Below are positions 2,800-47,400 of a DNA stretch of 64,000 nt, one piece after another. The notes beneath the pieces were generated by a model. That model was not told the DNA's origin. It searched no databases and saw nothing but the letters and a program-made list of their open reading frames with translations. The DNA is from Eukaryota sp. TZLM1-RC. Its lineage: Eukaryota > Protista > Metamonada: BaSk clade. Both the position numbers and the translations under genes were made by a program. Numbering within the stretch: the first letter of the stretch is position 1; each line of letters starts with the position of its first letter. The DNA lies in NCBI GenBank assembly GCA_040285825.1, contig JAUPSS010000003.1:1054001-1118000 (forward strand), written 5' to 3'.

Positions 2800-3184
2800 T
2801 CTGTGAGAAAGAATCATGATAAGAGACACTCTATAATCGCTTAAAAGAGGTCGACATGTGACAAGAGAGAATGTAATGACATGACAAAACAAACATGATA
2901 CCAAAAGTATTGAGTGAGAACTTAACTAATCAGTACAAGAGGCCATCAGAGAACCAAGTGATGCAACTGCTGTAATAGTCCCATTTATTAGGTTGAAACT
3001 CAGTTACCTCATAAACAACAAGAGTCCTGAGCAGATTGTGTTGTGCTTGTATCTCCATTCCACTACGGGGTTTGTTCAATGGAATGTTGTGACTCATTGA
3101 AAGTAGAGCGTCAATGAAATCCACCTCAGGAGCGAACTGCGTAAGGTTACACCAAGAAGTGACCATACAAAACCCTGATTTTAA

Positions 3185-3347
3185 CACCAACAGAATAACA
3201 GTTGTTGACATAAAAAAATTACTGTGACCCACCCCAGTCCAAGTGGAGATGAGGGGGCTGTTCTACCACTGTCTCACCACAGTGCAATGGTGGAGGATAG
3301 AACAGAAGTACACATTCATGAGCGTGTACAAGCCACAAAGGTATGTT
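3185..3347 (-). ncRNA. U1: U1 snRNA with variant 5' end AACAUACCUUUG
   Basis: Minus strand shows helix H UGUGGC/GUCACA, stem I GUACAC/GUGUAC with loop GCUCAUGAAU (U1-70K-site-like), stem II CUGUUCUA/UAGAACAG with loop CCAUUGCACU (U1A site), stem III, Sm site AAUUUUUUUAUG and terminal stem IV; same upstream element as U2. Confidence 0.92.
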
Positions 3348-5183: not shown

Positions 5184-5209
5184 ACTTCACTAGTGATAGG
5201 GTTCAAATT
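5184..5209 (+). promoter_or_regulatory. snRNA upstream (PSE/USE-like) element of U2
   Basis: ACTTCACTAGTGATAGGGTTCAAATT about 48 nt before the U2 start; shared with U1. Confidence 0.85.
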
Positions 5210-5231
5210 GGGAAAGAAATCTTTTTCCTTT

Positions 5232-5381
5232 AGTCTTCGCCTATATGGCTTAGATCAAGTGTAGTATCTGTTCTTATCAGTTTGACAGCTGATACGTCCT
5301 CTTCGGAGGGCTTTCTGTCATCGTATTTGTCTCCACCTTCAATGCTCCCGGCCTTACACCTTTGCTGGGTTGCGTTGTTGG
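5232..5381 (+). ncRNA. U2: U2 snRNA
   Basis: TGGCTTAGATCAAGTGTAGTATCTGTTCTTATCAG; branch-recognition GUAGUA at 5261-5266; stem IIa TATCAG/CTGATA with loop TGACAG complementary to downstream CTGTCA (IIc); stem IIb CCTC-TTCG-GAGG; terminal hairpin. Confidence 0.96.
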
Positions 5382-5736
5382 TTCTATTTTAACAACTGTT
5401 TGGGTCATCTATGTAGATTTCAACTCACCTTTCCCAATGCAGATATGGTAGTTTATCGTGACCTTATTTCGCTGTTGGGTATTCGCTACAGTGTGGAGTG
5501 GACACGGTCCAGTTTTGTACCAGTGACCAGTTATATACCCATATGTCCTTTATACGACATAATTTTCAAACTTACGTCTTTAGACTACCACTTGTTGCAG
5601 TCCACTGACACAGTTATTTACATCACTAAAGTTCTATTTGGTTTATTTTAACAACTATTTGGTCCATGTTTATGGTATTTTAAACCACGTACTCCGGTCT
5701 GAATATATTAGCGTCTTAGGTCCTTCTTCAATGTGT

Positions 5737-7473
5737 TATATATATTTTTTATAAATTGAAATTGATTTTCAACGCTAACAAAACATTAAACAAAAAACTA
5801 GAACTCAATATCCTCAATACACGCATCGACATCATCAAATCTTTTAAGCGCACGATTTTCATACTCTATTCCTAATTGTAATAGTGCTTTGGTCCAAATT
5901 TCTGGAATTGCTTTAAGAATACTAAAACCAATTCTATTGTGCCAGAAATTGAAGTTCAACTCTTTTCCTGCTCTTTCTTTTATTAAACTTCTGAAACCTT
6001 CGAGAAATTTAATGCCAGATATTTCAATGTTACCAAAAAGAGAAACAGCAAATGGAATCAACTGATACTTGACATGCTCAACACGTCCTAACTGAGATAA
6101 GGGTTCATTGTACTTTTTGATTTTGCTCTTTTCAGCAAAGCAAAGTGGAGTTTCATCTCTTTTAGAAAAGTCAATTGCTGAGTCTTTACAAAAATCAACA
6201 GTGACAACATCAACAACTTTAATAACACCATCAGACGCAGGGGTAATTAAATCAGCACGGCGTTTCCCAAAAGTATTTTCATCTTCATTTTCAGATGACA
6301 ACCTTCGCACAAGTGGTTCAACAAAAGCTTCAATGTGATGACTTTTGCACATAGCATATAGTTGGTCTCTAACAGCATCGTGAACAACTGAGCGATATGT
6401 AATATTAAATTTGCAATTAAATAAATGATTCAGATTAATGAGCTGACCACAACGACAAATCAAATCATTTGGCACACTACATGGCCACAGAAAACACCTC
6501 ATCCTGAAAGCAGTTGTCCATTGATGATCATTTAATAATAGACCATATACATTTGGAATCTGGGAAATAAGACAACTTGAGCTACTATCCTTGAGGTCAA
6601 TTAAAAAGTTTGCAAAAACGGGATTCTTTTCTTTAGCCAAGCTAAGACGAACACTGAAACCCAAGTTTTCAAAAACTTTTAATATCTTTTTCTGCAATTT
6701 AGCATATGCAAATTTCAAGGAAATCAAACTCCTGGGTGGAATTTCTTGAATATCAGCAGAAAAGCATTTGGACCATATGTGAGGAGAGATGCATTCAATT
6801 TCACTCTGCAAGGACACTAAATAGTCACTAACACAACATTCTATTAAATGCTGGTTTTCAGGAAAACGTTTCAAAAATTCAAAGACAAAATTTTTTCCTC
6901 CACCGATGAATGCGGCTTTACACAAATATTTTGATTTGTGAAAATCCAGGCCTCCCAATTCTGTGCTACAAAAAATATGACTACGTAAAAAAGAAGAATC
7001 AATATCGAGCAAATTAGCCAAACATTTTGTTCTTAATTCATTAAAAATTCTGCAAAATTCTTCTTCAAAATTATCCAAAAGAGAGGAAAGTTGATTTCGA
7101 ATTTCATCAAAATTGCCTAAATAACAACCTAAAAAACGAAATCCTGATTCAAAATAATTGATAAAAGGAACACTTTGATCATCAATAATGAGATCAGCAG
7201 GCTCTCTACCAATCAATAAACATTTGGAAATATTTAGAGAAAGACCAATTTGATAATAGCGCTGTTGAACAATTTCAGCAATTGTTCTCAATGAATCAAT
7301 TGGACCAATTGTTGATATGTCATCCATCTAAGCAGTTATATGAACATCTGGAAATTCTTGTTTTAATTCACACATTAAAGGATGGATAGCAAGGCAGAAA
7401 AAGAAAGGACCTAATGGATCACCTTGTTTGACACCAGATGATGATATTAGATTGAATTCTTCATAAACAAGAG
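5737..7473 (-). mobile_element. 5'-truncated CRE-like non-LTR retrotransposon, family A (C-terminus EDIEF)
   Basis: GVKQGDPLGP, (stop)MDD, CxC..H..C knuckle, HDAVRD..EP..RADL..D endonuclease; A/TA tail; 10-bp TSD TTCAATGTGT at 5727-5736 and 7474-7483. Confidence 0.9.
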
Positions 7474-8002
7474 TTCAATGTGTGCTCAATGGTTTCTTTA
7501 AACGTAAGTTATTTTTGCGAGTGTTTTCCATACAGAACTCCACTCTCTTCGATATTACTATGTGGGACACAAACCTCAAAACTTTTGTTGCTATTTTAAC
7601 TTTCCCCACTTATCATTGTATATGAACTCCATTCTGGTTCCTCATCATTCAACTATTTTCAGCAACCAACAACGTTTTACTCATGTGTATATATCTTTAT
7701 AACAAAATATGTCGGATAGCTATTGGTGGAGCCAAGGGGTCTATGTAGAGGGAGTACCACTTCATCACAGCCTTGGATATTGATGTTTGTTTGTCTAACA
7801 TTGTATTGTTAACCCAAACATCAACATTTTTTGTGTATATTGATTGTTGTTAAAACTTGATGTTTGTTGGACAATGTTAATCATATTTTTTAAAACAATT
7901 CAAAATCGTGTTTATTGTCAAAACACAATAAATCAATGTTTTAAAACAAGATGAAAACAAAATCATTTACACTAAACAAAGAAAATGACCACCACTACTT
8001 GA

Positions 8003-9703
8003 TTACTTACTGAAAGAGTCAATCAGCTGTACTGGTGTAATCAAATCAGTTGTGCCGATAGTTCCCTTCATTCTTTTTGACTTACAAAACTCAAGCAAAG
8101 CATGGTACTCCAAAACCGAACACCCCCCAACTATAACCAGGATAACCTCATCAAAGGTTCTAGACCTAGGAGGAGCATTGGGAGGAAGCTTTGGATCAAA
8201 CTGAACCATAGAATGATCTGGTACTGGAGACAGAAAAGAATTGAATATCTGAACAATTGGGAGTTGCCTAAATCTGTCAAGACCTGGGATATTGGCCACA
8301 GCCATTGAAGACATCATTTTCAATCCTTTTTGGGCTAAATTGAGTAAGGAAGCCGAACTTGGTGTAGAAGGAGGACTGTCTGAAGACATAAAAGACTTTA
8401 AATCTTTGATAAATTCTACAAGTTTCGGATTGCAATCCAGATTGTTTTGTATTTCAGTTACCTCATCATGTGAAACATTTGCAACAAAATAGTAAATTAT
8501 AAATAACCTGATTCTGTCGCTCTTATTGCCAAAGACTTCTGTCGACTCATGACTTGACATCAAAAGGTTTTTGACCTTCTCACGTAACCCACGACTGATA
8601 TGAGCACCCTTTAAAGCAATCAACTCCTTTTCCACCTCAATAAATACATCAAGGTTCCTGTCCTGAAGTTCTTTCAAGATACAATGCCCCAAAGTCGTGT
8701 GGGCGTCAATTGAGTCCTTGACTCTAGTTAACTCACCCAACTTTCCAACAACTTTACTCAACTCTGCAAGCTTTCCCTCTTCTTCTTGTTCGTGTCTCTT
8801 TGATTGGAGTTGATAGTCATTAAGAGCATGTTCCACTGCATCAGTCACTTCAGGTAATTCTTTGTGAGAGTTTGAGTTGAACAGGGGATCAGAATCATCT
8901 AGAACAATCATTTTTGATTGGTTTTGTGAGCTTGTATACTCCACTTTGTTAACTTCATGCATCTTGACCACCCCATTGTCCACCAGTTCCATAATTAAAG
9001 CATGGTAGACCCAAGAATGAAGCAATGGAGTGAGGGGGTCTGCTGCTCTGTCGACCAGAACCATCAATGGTCGGGAAAGAGAAGTTCGCGAGGAAGAGTG
9101 TTCGCGAAGAAGAGAGTCAAGTTGAGTGGCAATGTCAAATGACACCGAACCTGAAATAGTTCGAATGATGGGTGTTTGATTGAGAGAGTGGCAAAGGTGA
9201 AGAAGAGAAGATGAAATGGTGTTGATTTCGGGAGAGTTTTTGTCTGTGATAGCATTGAGTTTTTGGAAAGCGTTTGGGAACAGAAGAGTAAAGAAACTGG
9301 GCTGGATGGCAAGGTAGTGTAGATAGCAGTCACGAACAGCTAGCACCTTTGAAGGGTATGGTATTGCTGAGGCAAGCTGTTCTAGAAAAGTTGATGTAGT
9401 AGGAGAAGTGAAAACGAAATAAACTGATTCATAAAGATTGTTTTTAAAGTCCTGGGAGATGCGTTGTATGTTTTCGGCAGTTGGAAGAAGGAGATAGACT
9501 GCAGGAACAGAGGGAATAGGTTGGCGTTTTTGAGTCAAGTCTAGAAATAAAGTAAAGCCCATTTCATAGAGACAAGATTGTTTGAAAAGGGTTGAAACAA
9601 GAGAATAGCCATGAGAATCAAGAATGAGAAGTTTAAACGGAGATGGTTCATCTGGGAAGGTGAGTACTTCCCTGAGAATTGAACGTTGTGTATCCTTGAC
9701 CAT
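8003..9703 (-). CDS. SLY1: Sec1/Munc18-family protein Sly1
   Basis: FKLLILD, RQPIPSVPAVY..PT.ENIQRI.QD...LYES, RPLMVLVDR..D..TPLLHSW.YHAL, IVGGCSVLEY. Confidence 0.92.
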   Translation of the reverse strand: MVKDTQRSILREVLTFPDEPSPFKLLILDSHGYSLVSTLFKQSCLYEMGFTLFLDLTQKRQPIPSVPAVYLLLPTAENIQRISQDFKNNLYESVYFVFTSPTTSTFLEQLASAIPYPSKVLAVRDCYLHYLAIQPSFFTLLFPNAFQKLNAITDKNSPEINTISSSLLHLCHSLNQTPIIRTISGSVSFDIATQLDSLLREHSSSRTSLSRPLMVLVDRAADPLTPLLHSWVYHALIMELVDNGVVKMHEVNKVEYTSSQNQSKMIVLDDSDPLFNSNSHKELPEVTDAVEHALNDYQLQSKRHEQEEEGKLAELSKVVGKLGELTRVKDSIDAHTTLGHCILKELQDRNLDVFIEVEKELIALKGAHISRGLREKVKNLLMSSHESTEVFGNKSDRIRLFIIYYFVANVSHDEVTEIQNNLDCNPKLVEFIKDLKSFMSSDSPPSTPSSASLLNLAQKGLKMMSSMAVANIPGLDRFRQLPIVQIFNSFLSPVPDHSMVQFDPKLPPNAPPRSRTFDEVILVIVGGCSVLEYHALLEFCKSKRMKGTIGTTDLITPVQLIDSFSK

Positions 9704-9784
9704 GCTAAGAGACAAACGCAAACAGCAATTGGGTGAATAGATACCAAATTACAATATTCAATTTTCTCAAATAGTACTACAACT

Positions 9785-13231: not shown

Positions 13232-15726
13232 CTAAGATTCCATTGCTTCTTCACCTTTGTTTTCTTCCTTCTTCTCCTCTTCTTTTTTACCTGCTTCACC
13301 TTTGTTTTCTTCCTTCTTCTCCTCTTCTTTCTTTGGTTTAGGTTTATTCAAAACCTTCATAACAGCAGTTTCGAATTCGGTTAATCTCTTTAAAATGTCG
13401 TCAACAGTGATGGGGGGATCTTGCACCAAAGGTAACCCTTGGACAGATTCCTTATACTTCGCCAGTGACTTTGAAACAGATTTAATTTCCTTCTCTACAG
13501 ACTTCCAATCAGCTGCTTCCAAATGGTCGTATTCAGGGGCAGGACTATCCTTGGTGGCGACAAGTTCACTATACTTTTGAATAGAGTGCTGTAGGGTTTC
13601 AAGAGCGCTTGGTCTGGATTGGTGTTGGTTATAGCGATATCTGGCCTTGTCCACTGGACCTCGGACTTGGGAGAGCTTAGATTCATACACAGTTTTGGGA
13701 CAATCAAAACCATCATCATATAGCCAATCCTCCAATTCATTAAGCTGAGATAAAACTTTTTGTGCATCAGATTGTTCAATGAAATGTGATAAAGAGTCAT
13801 TCAGGGCTGAGCGAGCTTCATAAACAAATGATTCAAGCTTAACTTTGGCCTCAGTAGCTTCAATAAACTCAGCATCCTTTTGTTGAAGGAACTGTTCCTC
13901 CTGTTGAGCAGTTGAAATGACATCTTGGGTAACAGAAAAACCGGAAACTTCAACTACAGCAAGACGGTGTTGGACTTGGCGTTTTTGCTGAACAATTTTA
14001 GTTTTCTTTTCCTTTGGTTTTTCAGTCTTCTCTTTTTCCCCTTCCTTTTGCTCACTGTCTTGACTCTCCTCCATTGGTGCCCCATTAGGATCAGCAACCT
14101 CAGTGGCATTGGGATCTTTGGCAGGAACTTCGGGGGAGGGAGTAGTGGCTGATACTTCTTCCATTGATTCAGATTCTGCTGGTGTGTCATCTGGTACTTC
14201 CACATCAACGGTGGTAGTCTCAGTGACAAAGCACTTACCAGGTTCAACCAACAAATCACCAGACATTTTAACATGAATCTTCATCTTATAGTCTTCATTA
14301 GCAGATAAATGACTGGGAAACCCTTCAATTCTCCAAGTGGCGATTGGTTGATCAGGGTAAGCCAAGCCAATGTTAAATGGTGCTGGTTTGCGGGTAACAT
14401 TCAGTTTTCTGGTGAGTGGAGCTTGGCAGTGAGCAGGGAACATTTCAACAGCTTGTAATTCATCATTGGTATTTGGATAATTCAGAGTTACAGCCTTTGG
14501 AACTCCCAAATCAACAACTGTAACATCGCGGACCTTGAACAAAGGAGAAAGCATAGCAGCTTGATAAGCAGCACCAGTGGAGATATCATCTTCAGGATTG
14601 AGAGTTCTCAGCACTGAATCATGACCAAATGAATGAGAGAGAACATTGGCAACAGAAGGGATTCTTGAAGCACCCCCGATACCAACTACACCATCAATCT
14701 TGTGTTCAAATCCATTAGGAACTAGAGATGCACAAGTTTCGGCTACTTTTTCAAGCAAAGGGCGGGCCATTTCTTCAAATTGATCACGAGTTATGGAAGA
14801 ATCATAGTCGGTATCTTCCATAAGGGCTTCCATATGAACAGAGACCTCGGTGTTGGCAGACAAAACCTTCTTAATCTTATCACATTCAGTAGAAAGACGG
14901 AGAACGGCTTTAGGGTTTTCAAAAACATTTAGACCAGTCTTCTTGAAGAAATCATCTGCAAAATGCTTGACCAAAAGAGCATCAAAGTCGCGACCACCAA
15001 GAAATTCACCACTGGCAACAGAGATAATCTGACAATTTCCCTGACTGACTTTGGCAAGAGCGAGTTGGGTATCAGCATAACCAACGTCAGCAAAGACAAA
15101 GTGTTGGGCAGGCTGATTTTCTGAGGCAATGGGAAGACTGGCATGTTTTTTGAGTGTGTAAGCAAGAACAGCAGCAGTGGTTTCATTCAATACACGTAGA
15201 CAATTTAGCCCGGCAATCTTACAGGCAGCACGAACCAATTGGCGTTGTTCGTCATTGAAGTAGACTGGAACAGCAATACAAACATCAGAAACATTATGTC
15301 CAGCTGCTTGGGCCATTTTCTTGATTTGGACAAGGTGCATGGCCATTATTTGTTCAGGAAGGTAAGTCTTTGTTTCGTTACGGATTCGCACCTGGACAGC
15401 AGCTTTTCTGTCATCAGTTTCAACAATAGAATAAGGGCAGAAGGAACGTTCAACATCAAAGCCAGGATCTGTAGTTCTACGGCCTACCAGACGAGAAATT
15501 GAAGAGATGGTACGCTTAATGTTGGATCGGCGCTGAATAGCTGCAGGATTGCCCCAAACGCGCTCTCGATCAGTAAAAGCAAGCATGTTTCTGAGATAAA
15601 TGTACTGTGCAAAACAACATACGCTGAGTGTCGTAGAGCAGAGCCATCTAGAACAACATCAACACCACCACGTCCAACTGCTGCGACAACAATTTTATTT
15701 GAACCAAAATCGATTCCAAGAGTCAT
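13232..15726 (-). CDS. HSP110: Hsp110/SSE-family chaperone (two exons)
   Basis: GIDFG N-terminus (15726) joins the 784-aa ORF after removing intron 15591-15622; LNETTA, GGRDFD, RTLN, acidic insertion, LEDWLYDDG. Confidence 0.93.
15591..15622 (-). other. 32-nt spliceosomal intron GTATGT...TTATCTCAG
   Basis: Removal restores frame (RHSA-NMLAF). Confidence 0.92.
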
Positions 15727-15911
15727 GTAGAAGTATAATCCGTAAGATAGATGAAGGTATCGTTTTATGCGGGATCAATTGTATGTGTTTCATTAAAAAG
15801 AGCATAGTAATGACTCAGTGACACGTTGCAGATTTGCCTACGTAACCATTTCTTCAGATCCCCCATCCCACTAGATGTAACTGCCAAAACATTTGTTTAT
15901 AACATGTACAA

Positions 15912-17177
15912 TTATCTTCGCAACTTCTTCACATGTTGCAATATTGGTCTGTGATAAGCTCTTCTCTTCATCAAACGTTGGCTAGCTATTTTGGGAATAT
16001 CTTCTTTTGGATCAAGTTGATACCCACGATAATGATCTGTTCGTTGCTTAAGGTTTTTCACTTTCTGAACCTTTCTTATTGTCCTTTCAGTTGTATTTTC
16101 ATTGAATATTTTAAGTTTACTCTCCATAAAATTCTGTACAACCTCTTTCAGCTGGTGATATTCCTCTAAATATATGAGTTGTTCCTTCCACAGATGTTGT
16201 GAATCATCACCAACATTCAGTTTATCAAGTACAAATTCCACATCCTCACTTGTCCATCGAGTAGGATCTTCTGTGAACGAGTGTACTAAACACTGGAAGA
16301 GGTAAAAATGATGTTTGTGGATGTTTGGAATATTGAATATGGTTTGAAAATGGGGAGGAAAAAGGAGAATCACACTGTCTAAACTGTCGAAATTAAAAAG
16401 AAACTTCACAAGGGAGTGGCTTTCAGAAGTGGAGGTAATGATACCAAGTAAACCATTAGAATCTACTCCTTTCCAACAATCAACATTTGAGACCCGCCCA
16501 AGATAATGCTCTAGGACTTCAAGAGTTACATCAACTAAATTTGAAAATTCTGTAAACCTTTTGCAGATGTAGAACAAATTGGTCAATGATAGTTGTTTGA
16601 AGGGCAGTGACCACATTTGTGTTTTAAGGGATTCTAAATGATACTCTTCTATGTGGGAAAACATACACTCAAAGATCCAAAGTGCTTGGTTCTCTGTATT
16701 TATGTATGGTTCCACTAAAGGAAGGAAATCTTGATTAATGTAAGTGAATAAAGAGTTTGGATGTAAAGTGTTTATCTCGGAAATACTCTGCATAACGGAT
16801 AGGAATGTATCCTTATTGTTGGCAACACTGACATCCTCTATAAGGGATATCAATGAAGAGTAATTCTCTTTGATGAGTGAAGTACAGAGGGTAAGAAGTC
16901 GAGTAGAACCAAACAGAAGTGCGATATTCCAGTAGTAATATATATTAGTCTCCGTGAAGATTGGAGCAGGAAACTCATAATACCACTGAAGGAATACCTG
17001 TAGGGTTTCGCTCGTGATATCATATTCAGTAACGTCAAAGCCATTATATTCCGCTGGAACGTTGTGCAATAAAGTGCAATCCTGGAAGAACGTAGGTTTT
17101 ACATAAAATGTTTCATTCTCGAAGACGATCCTGAAATTGTCCGAGTGTAAAGCATCATTGAAGAGTTGTCGGATCAT
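15912..17177 (-). CDS. BTB/POZ-like domain protein
   Basis: N-terminal LFND..HSDNFRIVF..F.V...LQVFLQWYY..T..N pattern resembles BTB. Confidence 0.6.
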   Translation of the reverse strand: MIRQLFNDALHSDNFRIVFENETFYVKPTFFQDCTLLHNVPAEYNGFDVTEYDITSETLQVFLQWYYEFPAPIFTETNIYYYWNIALLFGSTRLLTLCTSLIKENYSSLISLIEDVSVANNKDTFLSVMQSISEINTLHPNSLFTYINQDFLPLVEPYINTENQALWIFECMFSHIEEYHLESLKTQMWSLPFKQLSLTNLFYICKRFTEFSNLVDVTLEVLEHYLGRVSNVDCWKGVDSNGLLGIITSTSESHSLVKFLFNFDSLDSVILLFPPHFQTIFNIPNIHKHHFYLFQCLVHSFTEDPTRWTSEDVEFVLDKLNVGDDSQHLWKEQLIYLEEYHQLKEVVQNFMESKLKIFNENTTERTIRKVQKVKNLKQRTDHYRGYQLDPKEDIPKIASQRLMKRRAYHRPILQHVKKLRR

Positions 17178-30519: not shown

Positions 30520-31492
30520 ATGTACAAGCTTGTTCTTCTTATCAGTGTTTTAGCATTAGTGGTTAACTGCCAATACTACCTACAAAGCCCAATCGTTCAT
30601 CGCGTTAATTCAGCAAATGCTCTCTGGTATGCTGCTGTTTCCGATCGTTTCGTAGGTTATACAACTGAAGACTTGGACAATTACTTCAATGCCCAAGTCG
30701 ACACCTCTGATGTGCCAGCTGAGACTGCAGCTCAGATGGGAATCTTTAACGCCCCAAAATCTTACGATGTTCGTGAAGCCACTGGATGTTCTAAGTACTC
30801 CCTTGACCAAGGCAGGTGTGGTAGTTGTTGGGCATTTGGAGCAATTAGTCAGTTTTTTTATTCCTTCGTCTTATCTCAGGATCCACTACTGATCGTTTCT
30901 GCCAAGCCCTAAATGACACTTCTTTCCCTCTTTTATCTCCCCAACACCTGGTTTCATGTGATTGGGAAGGAAATATGGGTTGTAATGGAGGTTTTCCCGC
31001 TCTCGCCATGAAATATATCGAGTTCTTAGGTATTACTACTGAGGAATGTTATCCTTATGTCTCAGGCAAGACCCAAAAGAGCGAAAAGTGTAAGACCAAG
31101 TGTCATGATGGATCTGAAATGAAACGCTACCATCTCCACAAGTTCTCCACACGTTCCTACAGAAAAGAGGAAGATATGATTGCTGCCCTGATCAAATACG
31201 GCTCTGCTGAAGTTGCATTTACTGTATATGAAGTTTGTTTTATTTTTATATCTCATTTCAGGATTTTATGAGCTACAAAGGTGGTATTTATCATCACGTA
31301 CAAGGTCGTCAATTAGGTGGACATGCAGTAACTCTCATTGGTTATGGAGAAGAAAATGGTGTCAAGTATTGGTTATGTGCCAACTCTTGGGGATCCACCT
31401 GGGGAGAGCAAGGAACTTTCAGAATCTTGAGAGGAAAGAATGAATGTGGCATTGAATCAAATGGAGCTGTAGGTGGAACACCCAAGCTTTAA
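30520..31492 (+). CDS. Cathepsin B-like papain-family (C1A) cysteine protease (three exons)
   Basis: Signal peptide, DQGRCGSCWAF, GCNGG, FTVYEDF, GGHAV, ANSWG; frame restored by introns 30848-30879 and 31233-31261. Confidence 0.93.
30848..30879 (+). other. 32-nt intron GTCAGT...TTATCTCAG
   Basis: Removal gives GAIRSTTDRFC. Confidence 0.85.
31233..31261 (+). other. 29-nt intron GTTTGT...TTTCAG
   Basis: Removal gives the conserved FTVYEDFMSYKGG. Confidence 0.92.
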
Positions 31493-43323: not shown

Positions 43324-44416
43324 TTGTTCTTGTTTCAAATTATTTAAAACTCCTGTAATATATGTAAATCCGTTTGAATTCACTCAAAAACGCAAGACTA
43401 AATAAATCAATTCAAACAGTTGGAGTTTTTTGATAAATCTGTTAATCTCTAAAAATAGTGGAATTTCATGGTGTAGCTGGATCAAAATTGTCTAGTTTTT
43501 GTTTAATTGTTGAACTCAGTAAGTAGAACACTTTGTTTCATCCATATTGAAACCAATTACCAATGAACTCAGCCATTGTCGATCAACAGCTCAAATATTC
43601 AAATAAATTGAACAAGTGGAAACACAAGTATTGAAGAAAACTGCTGAATAATGACTTCACAAGTATGGAAAATTAGCTATAGTTGAATACATAGAAGATT
43701 CTTTAATAACAATAACTGGAACATTACTTCTTGTTTCCCTAAACACTTAAACTCTAGAAGGGTACTGTCTACTTGAAACTTTGATATGGAAAGCGCTTAA
43801 GTTTAATACACTTCTAAATGAATGCTTTTCATCCAGATGTTTGCAAACACTTTTTCATTAGAATGTGAAGCTCAGATAGGTTACTGTGTGAATATGTTAC
43901 TTGGTCATCAATACACAGTGGAAACCACAGATGTATAATCAGCCCATTAATTCAATTCCATCTTTTAATTCTTCCTCCATAAACCCCTGCTTTTCCAGAA
44001 GCTTGCTAATGACCATGGCTGTTGATGAACAATAGTATAACATGTATAACAAATCAATTGGTTCATTAAAATTGTGATTTTAGAAAGAATATGTCATACT
44101 AGGAAGATTGCAGATTTGTGTTATAAATCAACAACTGGGTGGCAACTGGATGGCAACTGGATGGCCCCAGAACATTAACAGAGTATTGACCCTCAAACAA
44201 TTTCTTTATCAAGTCTGTAAACGTTTAATTTTGATATATGCCAGGCGGTGTTTTCGTTAACCCTCTTCAAAAGCAGGCGGTAGATGCTGAGGAAATGGGT
44301 TCCATGCATGCATTACCTGCCTTTCAGCTCTCCATCGACAATTCTGTTTGTCAGCTTTCATCTTTTTTGATCCCAGCGCTCTGCGACTAAGGTTATGGTG
44401 AAGAAAATTGTCCTAT

Positions 44417-47400
44417 ATGGTGGTTTGTCCGTTGCATCGTCTCTTATCTCTAGGTATCTTTACGTTTATCTTAACTTCCATTCTTCTTACCATTCTTCTC
44501 TTTATTCCACAGTATCAGAGTGTTCATCATGTAGCAGACAGCATTGAATCCTTCAACTTTGCTCTCCTCATCGACGACATCCACTCAGACGATGATCGTC
44601 TAGCCAAACTAGACCTCACATTGTCCAATATCAAGGCAGATCACGACGTCAACATCTCACCTCTTCACTTCTCCTTCTCTGAGTCTCTCTCCCCAGTCGC
44701 TGTCAGTGGTGTTGTCTCCTCTATTACTGTTTCTAAGTTTCTCTTTAAACGGGAGATTCCCTCATTTAATGTTTACTTCAACTACACTTCAATCGGTGCT
44801 ATTTACACCGTAGTTAATGAAGTTGAAGACCTCGACCTCTCGGCACTTTCTATTTACGAAATTAGGAACTCCTCCGACAAGATCTTTATTATGGAATCTA
44901 TTGTTTACCCTATCGCAGACACTTTTGAAGTTGAGTGCCAGTATGTTGATTACACAACCACCCAGTCAGAAACGGAAACCCCCACATCACAAGTTTCTGA
45001 TCCTCATTACTATGTTTTTGAGCTAATTCACGGTGAAGAAATCGTCAACCACACCTTTGTCTCTCAGTTTGCTTTAAATAATTGGGGTAGGGTTGATTTA
45101 GCTGTTGAAGTTGTGAATAACTATGATTATGATAATGTATTAGTTGATGATTTACACTTTTTACTGTGGAGGTTTAGGTCTTTTGTCACGAGAACTGAAG
45201 GTATTCTTGCATATTTAGATCTCTCATTAAATATCTCCAGATTGGATGATTATGTCTTTGAAATTGTTTCTACGGTTGATGATGCTGTTTCTCTAGTCAC
45301 AGTTAGCGAACCAAGAGTGTCCTTTGTCATGACAAACTCATCATCATTGACGAATGCAGCCAATACAATCAAATCTTCTATTCCTTTATTTGTGGAGGTT
45401 AACGATGTGGATTCTGATACTGAACGGTTTGATTCATTATTGAACCATTTAAGCTCTCTCGTATCTAAGTTTGATGTAGCTTTAGACCTGGTGAACCTTG
45501 CTGATTATTATGCATTTGAAGTTACCATCTGCTCTGACCAATGTGAAGCAATTGAACTCTATCCTGATTATTACGAAAGAGCCAGCAACATTGTGTCCAG
45601 GGTAGTTGCTTTAATGACCTTTCCTACTTTGCAAATACCCTTGGAAATGAACCAAAGAGTTGCCGTGGAAAAGTATGTGAGTAGTTTTACGAAGGAAAAG
45701 GGTGTAATTGCTGAGGTTACTGAGGACGAAGGCTTTGAAGTTAAGCTTCATTTGAGAGACTATGAACAAGTTCTTAACCCTTCAGTTAATTTTAATGAAT
45801 TAGAATGCAATGAATTATTTGATACCTTTGAGTCACTAGTTACTCCGCACCTGGACACCGTCATTGAGATCCAAAGGTACACCAAACTTGGAAAGGAGCA
45901 AGGAATTATTGAGTTGATGCTTAATTACGTAAGACATTTAATTGTTGATTTCTCTGCTGAATATGATGAAGTGAACAACAGCTTCGATGTTACTGTCTCT
46001 TGCGGTGGTCTTTCCTCAACATTTACCTTTTATGATGTTGAATTCCAACTACCTCTGAGACACGGTGTTCAGGACGTTTATGCAAAGTTTGACACTTCTT
46101 TTGTAATCAAGTCTGATAATTTATATGGTTTTGGTCAGAACTTATGGGGAATGCTTGGTACAGGGGATAACGTCCGAAACTCGAACCCTGCAACCGTGAA
46201 TTTTGATAAGACCGTCACCAAGATTGTGAGTGGCCGTTACCATTCTCTTTTCCTTACTGACGAAGGTAAAGTTTTCACAGTTGGAGTGTTGTTTCATTCT
46301 CCTTATAATGGTGAAAGTTTCACGGAAGTTCCGGCTGAGGTTCCTGAATTATCTAATGTAATAGATCTAGCTGTGGGTTTAAACTTTTCCGTTGCAATTA
46401 CTAATGAAGGAGTTTATTCTTGGGGGTTTAATAAACATGGAGAATTGGGTATTGGAAACACTGAGAATTCTTTTGAAGTCAAGCTTAATATTCCTGGCGA
46501 TTTCACCTCCATTTCCACTACTCATTACCATGTGTTAGCTCTTGCTTCCAATGGCAACATCTACTCTTGGGGATTGAATGATGATGGTCAATTAGGGGAT
46601 GACTCGAGATATACGAGCTTTGAACCTGTTTTAGTTGAATCTGATGTAGTTTTTACATCAATTGCCGCTGGACATTACCATTCCCTTGCCATTTCTACTG
46701 ACAATGAAGTATATTCTTGGGGAAGGAACATTGAGTATCAGTTGGGAGACCTTGCTCCACCCAGTGTTCATGAAACAGCTGATGGACGTCGAGTACCAGC
46801 TAAGGTTCCTCTGACTGGTTCTTTTTCAATGGTTGCGGCAGGGTCGTGCCATTCCTTGGCCCTTGATGCTGATGGTGTTGTCTATTCTTGGGGATGCAAT
46901 CAATATGGTCAATTAGGCCATGGAGAAATTCAACATTTCCACCCTGTAGGATCACCTTCTCTAACATGCATTGATCACCTTTCGGCTGGTGCTTTTTCCA
47001 GCTCTTTTGTTACCATTATTGGAGAAGTGTTTACTGTTGGACTCAACGATGAGTTTCAGCTAGGCAGAGAGGACTGTGTTGTTTGTCTTGATCCAGTACA
47101 AAGTAGTCTGGAGTCCATTACTGAAACCTCTATGGGGTGGTATCATACTCTTTCTCTAACAACCAATGGTGACGTGGTTGGTGTGGGGAATCGCTATTAC
47201 GGAAAGTTGGGGTTACCTTTACTTGAAGATACCACTCCAGCTTTGGTTCCATTACGAAATATTGTTGAGGTGGCTGTTGGTGAACATCATGCACTCTATC
47301 TGAATGATAATGGCCAAGTCTATGCCAGTGGATACAACAAATATGGACAATTAGGAACAGGGGATTTTATTAATAGAAATAAGCCAGTCCTGATCCGATC

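Follow-up and report, generated by a model that had tools for sequence, protein, structure and literature searches.

A U1 snRNA gene of Skoliomonas litria with a changed base opposite intron position +4

TZLM1-RC, the type isolate of the free-living anaerobic metamonad Skoliomonas litria (PMC11603281), carries a U1 snRNA gene whose donor-pairing 5′ end reads ACAUAC instead of ACUUAC. The gene lies on the minus strand of the window (the whole stretch of 64,000 nucleotides that was analysed), from a predicted 5′ end at position 3347 to an approximate 3′ end at 3181 to 3185. Three proteins encoded in the window are recorded on JAUPSS010000003.1, a contig of 3.72 Mb in GCA_040285825.1, and the Hsp110 of the window matches a TZLM1-RC protein with 100% identity. 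The U1 gene, one of at least two that are nearly identical, probably encodes the working major-spliceosome U1 snRNA of S. litria, with a U5-to-A change that would pair with the +4 U of most introns. Its expression and its use in splicing are predicted here from sequence features.

Identity and anatomy of the U1 gene

The Rfam U1 model (RF00003) matched the minus strand over its whole length (1-166 of 166) at 3348-3181, with 40.3 bits and E = 5e-8 (E = 1e-6 for the same gene when the whole window was scanned). This agrees with the earlier note on this DNA, which had placed a U1 snRNA gene at 3185-3347. The gathering score of the family, 69.5, is not reached, and a default scan of the window at this cut-off listed U2 alone and not U1. 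The note's warning that standard searches may miss the gene is thus correct for the gathering cut-off and incorrect for an E-value search, which finds U1. The 29-bit shortfall presumably stems from divergence of the gene as a whole and not from a single base. Scans that apply the gathering score list too few U1 genes in these genomes.

The donor-pairing 5′ end, AACAUACCU, occupies 3347-3339 on the minus strand according to the sequence and its alignment to the Rfam consensus. The A at 3344 takes the place of the canonical U5, which faces intron position +4 (PMC10581693), so that the recognition sequence is ACAUACC rather than ACUUACC, as the note had read it. The canonical ACUUAC was absent from both U1 copies that were read, and both have ACAUAC. 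At its other eight positions the pairing end is intact, and so are the junction and the U1A site.

A constrained fold placed the four-way junction at 3337-3223, with a closing helix of 6 bp (3337-3332 paired to 3228-3223), all on the minus strand like the elements that follow. This fold, with the closing helix enforced, has an energy of -48.7 kcal/mol against -50.7 kcal/mol for the unconstrained one, which beats 198 of 200 shuffles (z = -2.5) and also forms stem-loops I-III. Stem-loop I (3329-3308; Rfam alignment and fold) has a U1-70K-like loop of 10 nt, which agrees at 7 of 10 positions, with three changes, with the U1-70K consensus. Stem-loop II (3305-3258; Rfam alignment and fold) contains an exact U1A site, AUUGCAC (3288-3282). 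It is followed by stem-loop III (3256-3229; fold) and by an Sm-like site that contains seven consecutive U (3220-3209; Rfam alignment). Stem-loop IV (3208-3187) is weak and doubtful, with -2.9 kcal/mol here and -0.8 kcal/mol in the second copy, the sole change of which falls in this element. The "complete U1 cloverleaf" of the note thus calls for a reservation about stem-loop IV. The gene resembles the Rfam family in matching the whole model and in its junction, U1A site and Sm-like site, but differs from it in score, in the A at position 5, in the U7 Sm site and in the weak stem-loop IV. U11 snRNA of the minor spliceosome was also considered and rejected: the best match within the clan was U1, and the donors described below have +5 G in 8/8, unlike the U11-type GUAUCCUU.

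A 3.5-kb block consisting of U2, a metallophosphoesterase gene, U1 and a gene for 216 aa is duplicated 7.4 kb away, just ahead of the window, with 96% identity (6222-9737 and 13619-17160 in locus L001, which contains this part of the window). In the second U1 copy the 5′ end is identical, and the 139 nt from there to the Sm site are unchanged; the U2 copies do not differ over 157 nt. Most differences between the blocks cluster at one edge, and the interior spacers, which differ by 2.0% (27 in 1327), were used as the baseline. Relative to this baseline, the chance of zero change is P = 0.06 for U1 alone and P = 0.002 for U1 and U2 together; gene conversion could alternatively produce the same picture. 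The assembly is Nanopore-based and the U1 score falls under the Rfam gathering score, both of which would suit an assembly error or a dead pseudogene. However, Illumina reads served for polishing, the same base occurs in both copies of the 96%-identical block, and the helices and the upstream element described below are intact. An error or a pseudogene is thus very improbable. No canonical U1 was found in the approximately 224 kb of S. litria genome that was searched, a share of under about 1-2%.

Donor sites and their fit to the U1 5′ end

Introns of S. litria were solved from NCBI gene ranges and product lengths, and the approximately 224 kb were scanned, with positions +3 to +6 unconstrained, for GT-AG introns 26-36 nt long whose removal would join reading frames. 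Annotated "introns" of transposon-like or unknown genes that lack the 3′ motif (22-25, 38 and >100 nt) were set aside because they are likely to be frame repairs. Eight introns supported by gene models and reading-frame joins remained. The Hsp110 intron (15622-15591, minus strand; 32 nt) begins with GTATGTT, as the note had stated. Annotation and homology both support it: the NCBI gene model exceeds the need of its 820-aa product by 32 nt, and in the relative GEM-RC the orthologue is interrupted at the corresponding position by an intron of 32 nt. Two introns were placed on the plus strand in a cathepsin gene, the first (30848-30879; 32 nt) by the solution that retains the CGSCWAF active site and the second at 31233-31261 (29 nt); their donors are GTCAGTT, the exception with +4 A, and GTTTGTT, respectively. 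The RCC1-repeat gene has two introns of 31 nt on the plus strand (44346-44376 and 44423-44453), each a unique solution with the donor GTTTGTC.

GTTTGT is the donor of four of the eight introns (both of the RCC1-repeat gene, cathepsin intron 2 and Rps23) and GTATGT of two (Hsp110 and a PrsW-like gene), while GTATGA (proteasome alpha) and GTCAGT (cathepsin intron 1) occur once each and GTAAGT in none of the eight. By column, position +3 has U4 A3 C1, +4 has U7 A1, +5 has G8 and +6 has U7 A1. The note had named a lack of +4 U enrichment at donors as the result that would count against it; +4 U proved to be above background (7/8; P about 0.002-0.006). Its donor consensus stood in part: +4 U is general, whereas GTATGT is not the consensus, with GTTTG in four donors and GTATG in three. 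Because GTTTG is at least as common as GTATG, the U1 end is a perfect match for under half of the introns. Likewise, the proposed complement to AG/GUAUGUU fits the intron side at Hsp110, and no exon-side consensus, AG or other, exists across the eight donors.

All eight introns, and those solved in loci L003 and L007-L009, are 29-34 nt long with a branch-like A at 7-8 nt from the 3′ end. This A lies within a loose YTNAY motif, despite the canonical GUAGUA of the U2 described below. Outside the eight, the annotated 23-nt intron of a zf-PARP gene (L017 1014-1042, plus strand) is probably 29 nt long and of the GC-AG type; its donor would be GCATGA, which also has +4 U.

In GEM-RC, all eight introns have +4 U (GTTTG, GTATG and GTGTG). 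In Skoliomonas sp. RCL (L008 and L009), four of six have it and the other two are GTAAGT, a donor that is absent from the 16 introns of S. litria and GEM-RC (P = 0.07, from small and partly selected samples). Where genes of GEM-RC and RCL allowed several length-consistent solutions, one was picked by the 3′ motif and +5 G, which makes these counts less independent than those of S. litria; two odd annotated introns of GEM-RC were left out. In this lineage the rule for donors is U at +4 and a loose choice at +3 rather than GTATGT. No U1 or other snRNA was found in four loci of GEM-RC and RCL (Hsp110, Sec1 and Rps23 loci), which showed no synteny with the U1 region. Hsp110 of GEM-RC (L003 9098-11587) is called as two consecutive genes of 281 and 528 aa, which suggests a frameshift or an assembly error.

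In the standard register over +1 to +6, the observed U1 end forms 41 of 48 possible Watson-Crick pairs with the eight donors and the canonical end 35 of 48. Two or more positions stay unpaired in one of the eight donors with the observed end and in five with the canonical end. Mean duplex energies, with pseudouridine and proteins left out, are -5.1 and -3.4 kcal/mol, respectively. Pairing is restored at +4 alone. Position 6 of this U1 is still U, which forms a Watson-Crick pair with A at +3, a wobble pair with G and a mismatch with U. For the commonest donor the fit is short of optimal, and the GTCAG donor (1/8) pairs worse with the changed U1. An end of the Entamoeba type, ACAAAC, does about equally well on the same eight donors (42/48 pairs; -5.2 kcal/mol), but it would lose the GTATG class and, in GEM-RC, the GTGTG class. 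Therefore, A5 combined with U6 is the one end that suits the widest range of donors with A, U or G at +3. On the exon side, no steady pairing is available to compensate.

Comparison with other lineages and a proposed origin of the change

ACUUAC is kept by Giardia, Trichomonas and 69 yeasts (bioRxiv 10.1101/2022.06.08.495308). The Giardia U1 starts with ACUUAC (PMC3510501), and in Spironucleus none was detected (PMC6679479). The note's statement that budding yeast keeps ACUUACC despite GUAUGU donors is borne out by 227 of the 230 yeast genomes with a U1 call (PMC10581693). Giardia, Trichomonas and Saccharomycotina resemble S. litria in being intron-poor and in having +4 U donors, and the first two are fellow metamonads. 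In contrast to S. litria, they retain ACUUAC and tolerate one U-U pair (PMC3510501; PMC10581693; bioRxiv 10.1101/2022.06.08.495308). In budding yeast, after the loss of METTL16, the unmethylated adenosine of U6 ACAGA reads +4 U while U1 is unchanged (PMC10581693). The shift of donors to +4 U with an unchanged U1 in intron-poor lineages has been stated as an open puzzle (bioRxiv 10.1101/2022.06.08.495308).

By analogy with budding yeast, the donors of S. litria may first have shifted to +4 U under the influence of U6, whose unmethylated ACAGA adenosine would pair with +4 U here as well. U1 would then have followed, the U5-to-A change restoring a Watson-Crick pair with +4 U. On a canonical U1, GUAUG leaves one mismatch, whereas GUUUG leaves two adjacent U-U mismatches, one more than the donors of yeast or Giardia, and U1 may have changed in S. 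litria because of these donors. This load of two unpaired positions is a plausible reason why U1 changed in S. litria and stayed as it was in yeasts.

The match to +4 U would instead be coincidental if U1 pairing were unimportant in S. litria and its introns of 29-34 nt were defined by U6 and a fixed branch point. Such drift would be in line with the divergent U1-70K loop and the weak stem-loop IV, with the very short introns and their branch spacing fixed at 7-8 nt from the 3′ end, and with the fact that U6, not U1, sets the +4 preference in yeasts (PMC10581693). However, the rest of the pairing end has stayed intact, as have the U1A site and the junction. The lone change falls at the single position, and to the single base of three, that complements the donors, and the pairing sequence is invariant in the yeast genomes cited above. 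We regard drift as improbable and favor a U1 that compensates for the donor shift.

Such compensation, a rare event, is already described in three amoebozoan lineages. Five Entamoeba species have the U1 end AACAAAC and Mastigamoeba has ACGUAC (bioRxiv 10.1101/2022.06.08.495308). As in S. litria, the U1 5′ ends of these intron-poor genomes complement donors with a pyrimidine at +4 and carry an extra A ahead of the motif that is able to pair with +7 U; Entamoeba also shares the GUUUGU donors. However, both opposing bases are changed in Entamoeba and its donors are nearly uniform, whereas in Skoliomonas only the base opposite +4 is changed and the donors are mixed, which corresponds to an intermediate state. 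The third case is Physarum polycephalum, which, according to the citation of it in bioRxiv 10.1101/2022.06.08.495308, has an ACAUAC U1 beside canonical copies. The letter change is the same and the donors cited for Physarum are GUAUGU, but +3 is split between U and A in S. litria, and canonical copies like those cited for Physarum were not found in the approximately 224 kb. Since the lineages are unrelated, the two ACAUAC ends presumably arose independently.

An alternative suggested by Physarum is a mixed family, in which canonical or ACAAAC-type U1 genes elsewhere in the S. litria genome would share the introns with ACAUAC. The coexistence of both forms as cited for Physarum, the imperfect match of ACAUAC to the commonest donor, GTTTG, and the small part of the genome that was searched favor such a mixed family. 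However, ACAUAC is found in both copies read, and these copies adjoin a canonical U2 that carries the same upstream element. A mixed family thus seems unlikely, though less so than drift.

With its changed base complementing the shifted donor position (+4 U in 7/8, a small sample), the S. litria U1 belongs to the donor-compensated type, to which it adds a new supergroup and an informative half-way fit. In the searchable literature, which leaves most subscription papers outside, there is no report of a donor-compensated U1 from metamonads, none for Skoliomonas, and no work on splicing in either Skoliomonas or Barthelona; splicing is not a subject of the genome paper. A tentative reading, to which we give slightly less than even weight, is that ACAUAC is the sole U1 of S. 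litria. It would then be the first clean +4-only compensation and the first in metamonads, half-way between the canonical and the Entamoeba forms, fixed because two mismatches, as at GUUUG donors, lie beyond a limit within which the donors of yeast, Giardia and Trichomonas remain. If this is true, RCL, in which GTAAGT donors persist, would date the switch within one genus. Yeasts never made the compensating U1 change, and S. litria is an independent case. We offer for testing the rule that U1 changes once a common donor would leave two mismatches. S. litria, a free-living soda-lake flagellate, is a culturable metamonad, and three Skoliomonas genomes have been sequenced.

Upstream element and neighbouring genes

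A canonical U2 snRNA gene with GUAGUA (5228-5384, plus strand; Rfam 92.6 bits) lies about 2 kb from U1 and is transcribed away from it, with the metallophosphoesterase gene between them. Sequence comparison revealed an element of 26 nt common to both genes, which starts 47 nt before the U1 5′ end (3394-3369, minus strand) and recurs upstream of U2 (5184-5208, plus strand) at about equal distance. The chance of its 13-mer match is about 1e-6 per upstream region compared. The element is likely an snRNA promoter element; the second U2 copy has it with two changes.

The final part of the shared element resembles a B box. U2 (5228-5390, plus strand) lacks both of the runs of four or more T in the Rfam consensus (in loop I and in the Sm site, which has three U), and the first T4 in its vicinity falls after its 3′ end. 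In U1 (3347-3209, minus strand), the first such run is the U7 Sm site. These features would fit transcription by RNA polymerase III, with U1 ending at the U run. However, about half of G+C-matched slices also lack T4.

The initial 13 nt of the element also occur in two repeats that flank an LTR retroelement (59425 and 52689, minus strand), followed there by a TATA-like sequence. A match of 12 nt inside an RCC1-repeat gene (L017 12921, plus strand) is palindromic and probably due to chance. An identical zinc-knuckle protein of 251 aa is encoded at at least six places on five contigs, several of them in tandem (L010 152-907; L012-L017), which points to a recently active element.
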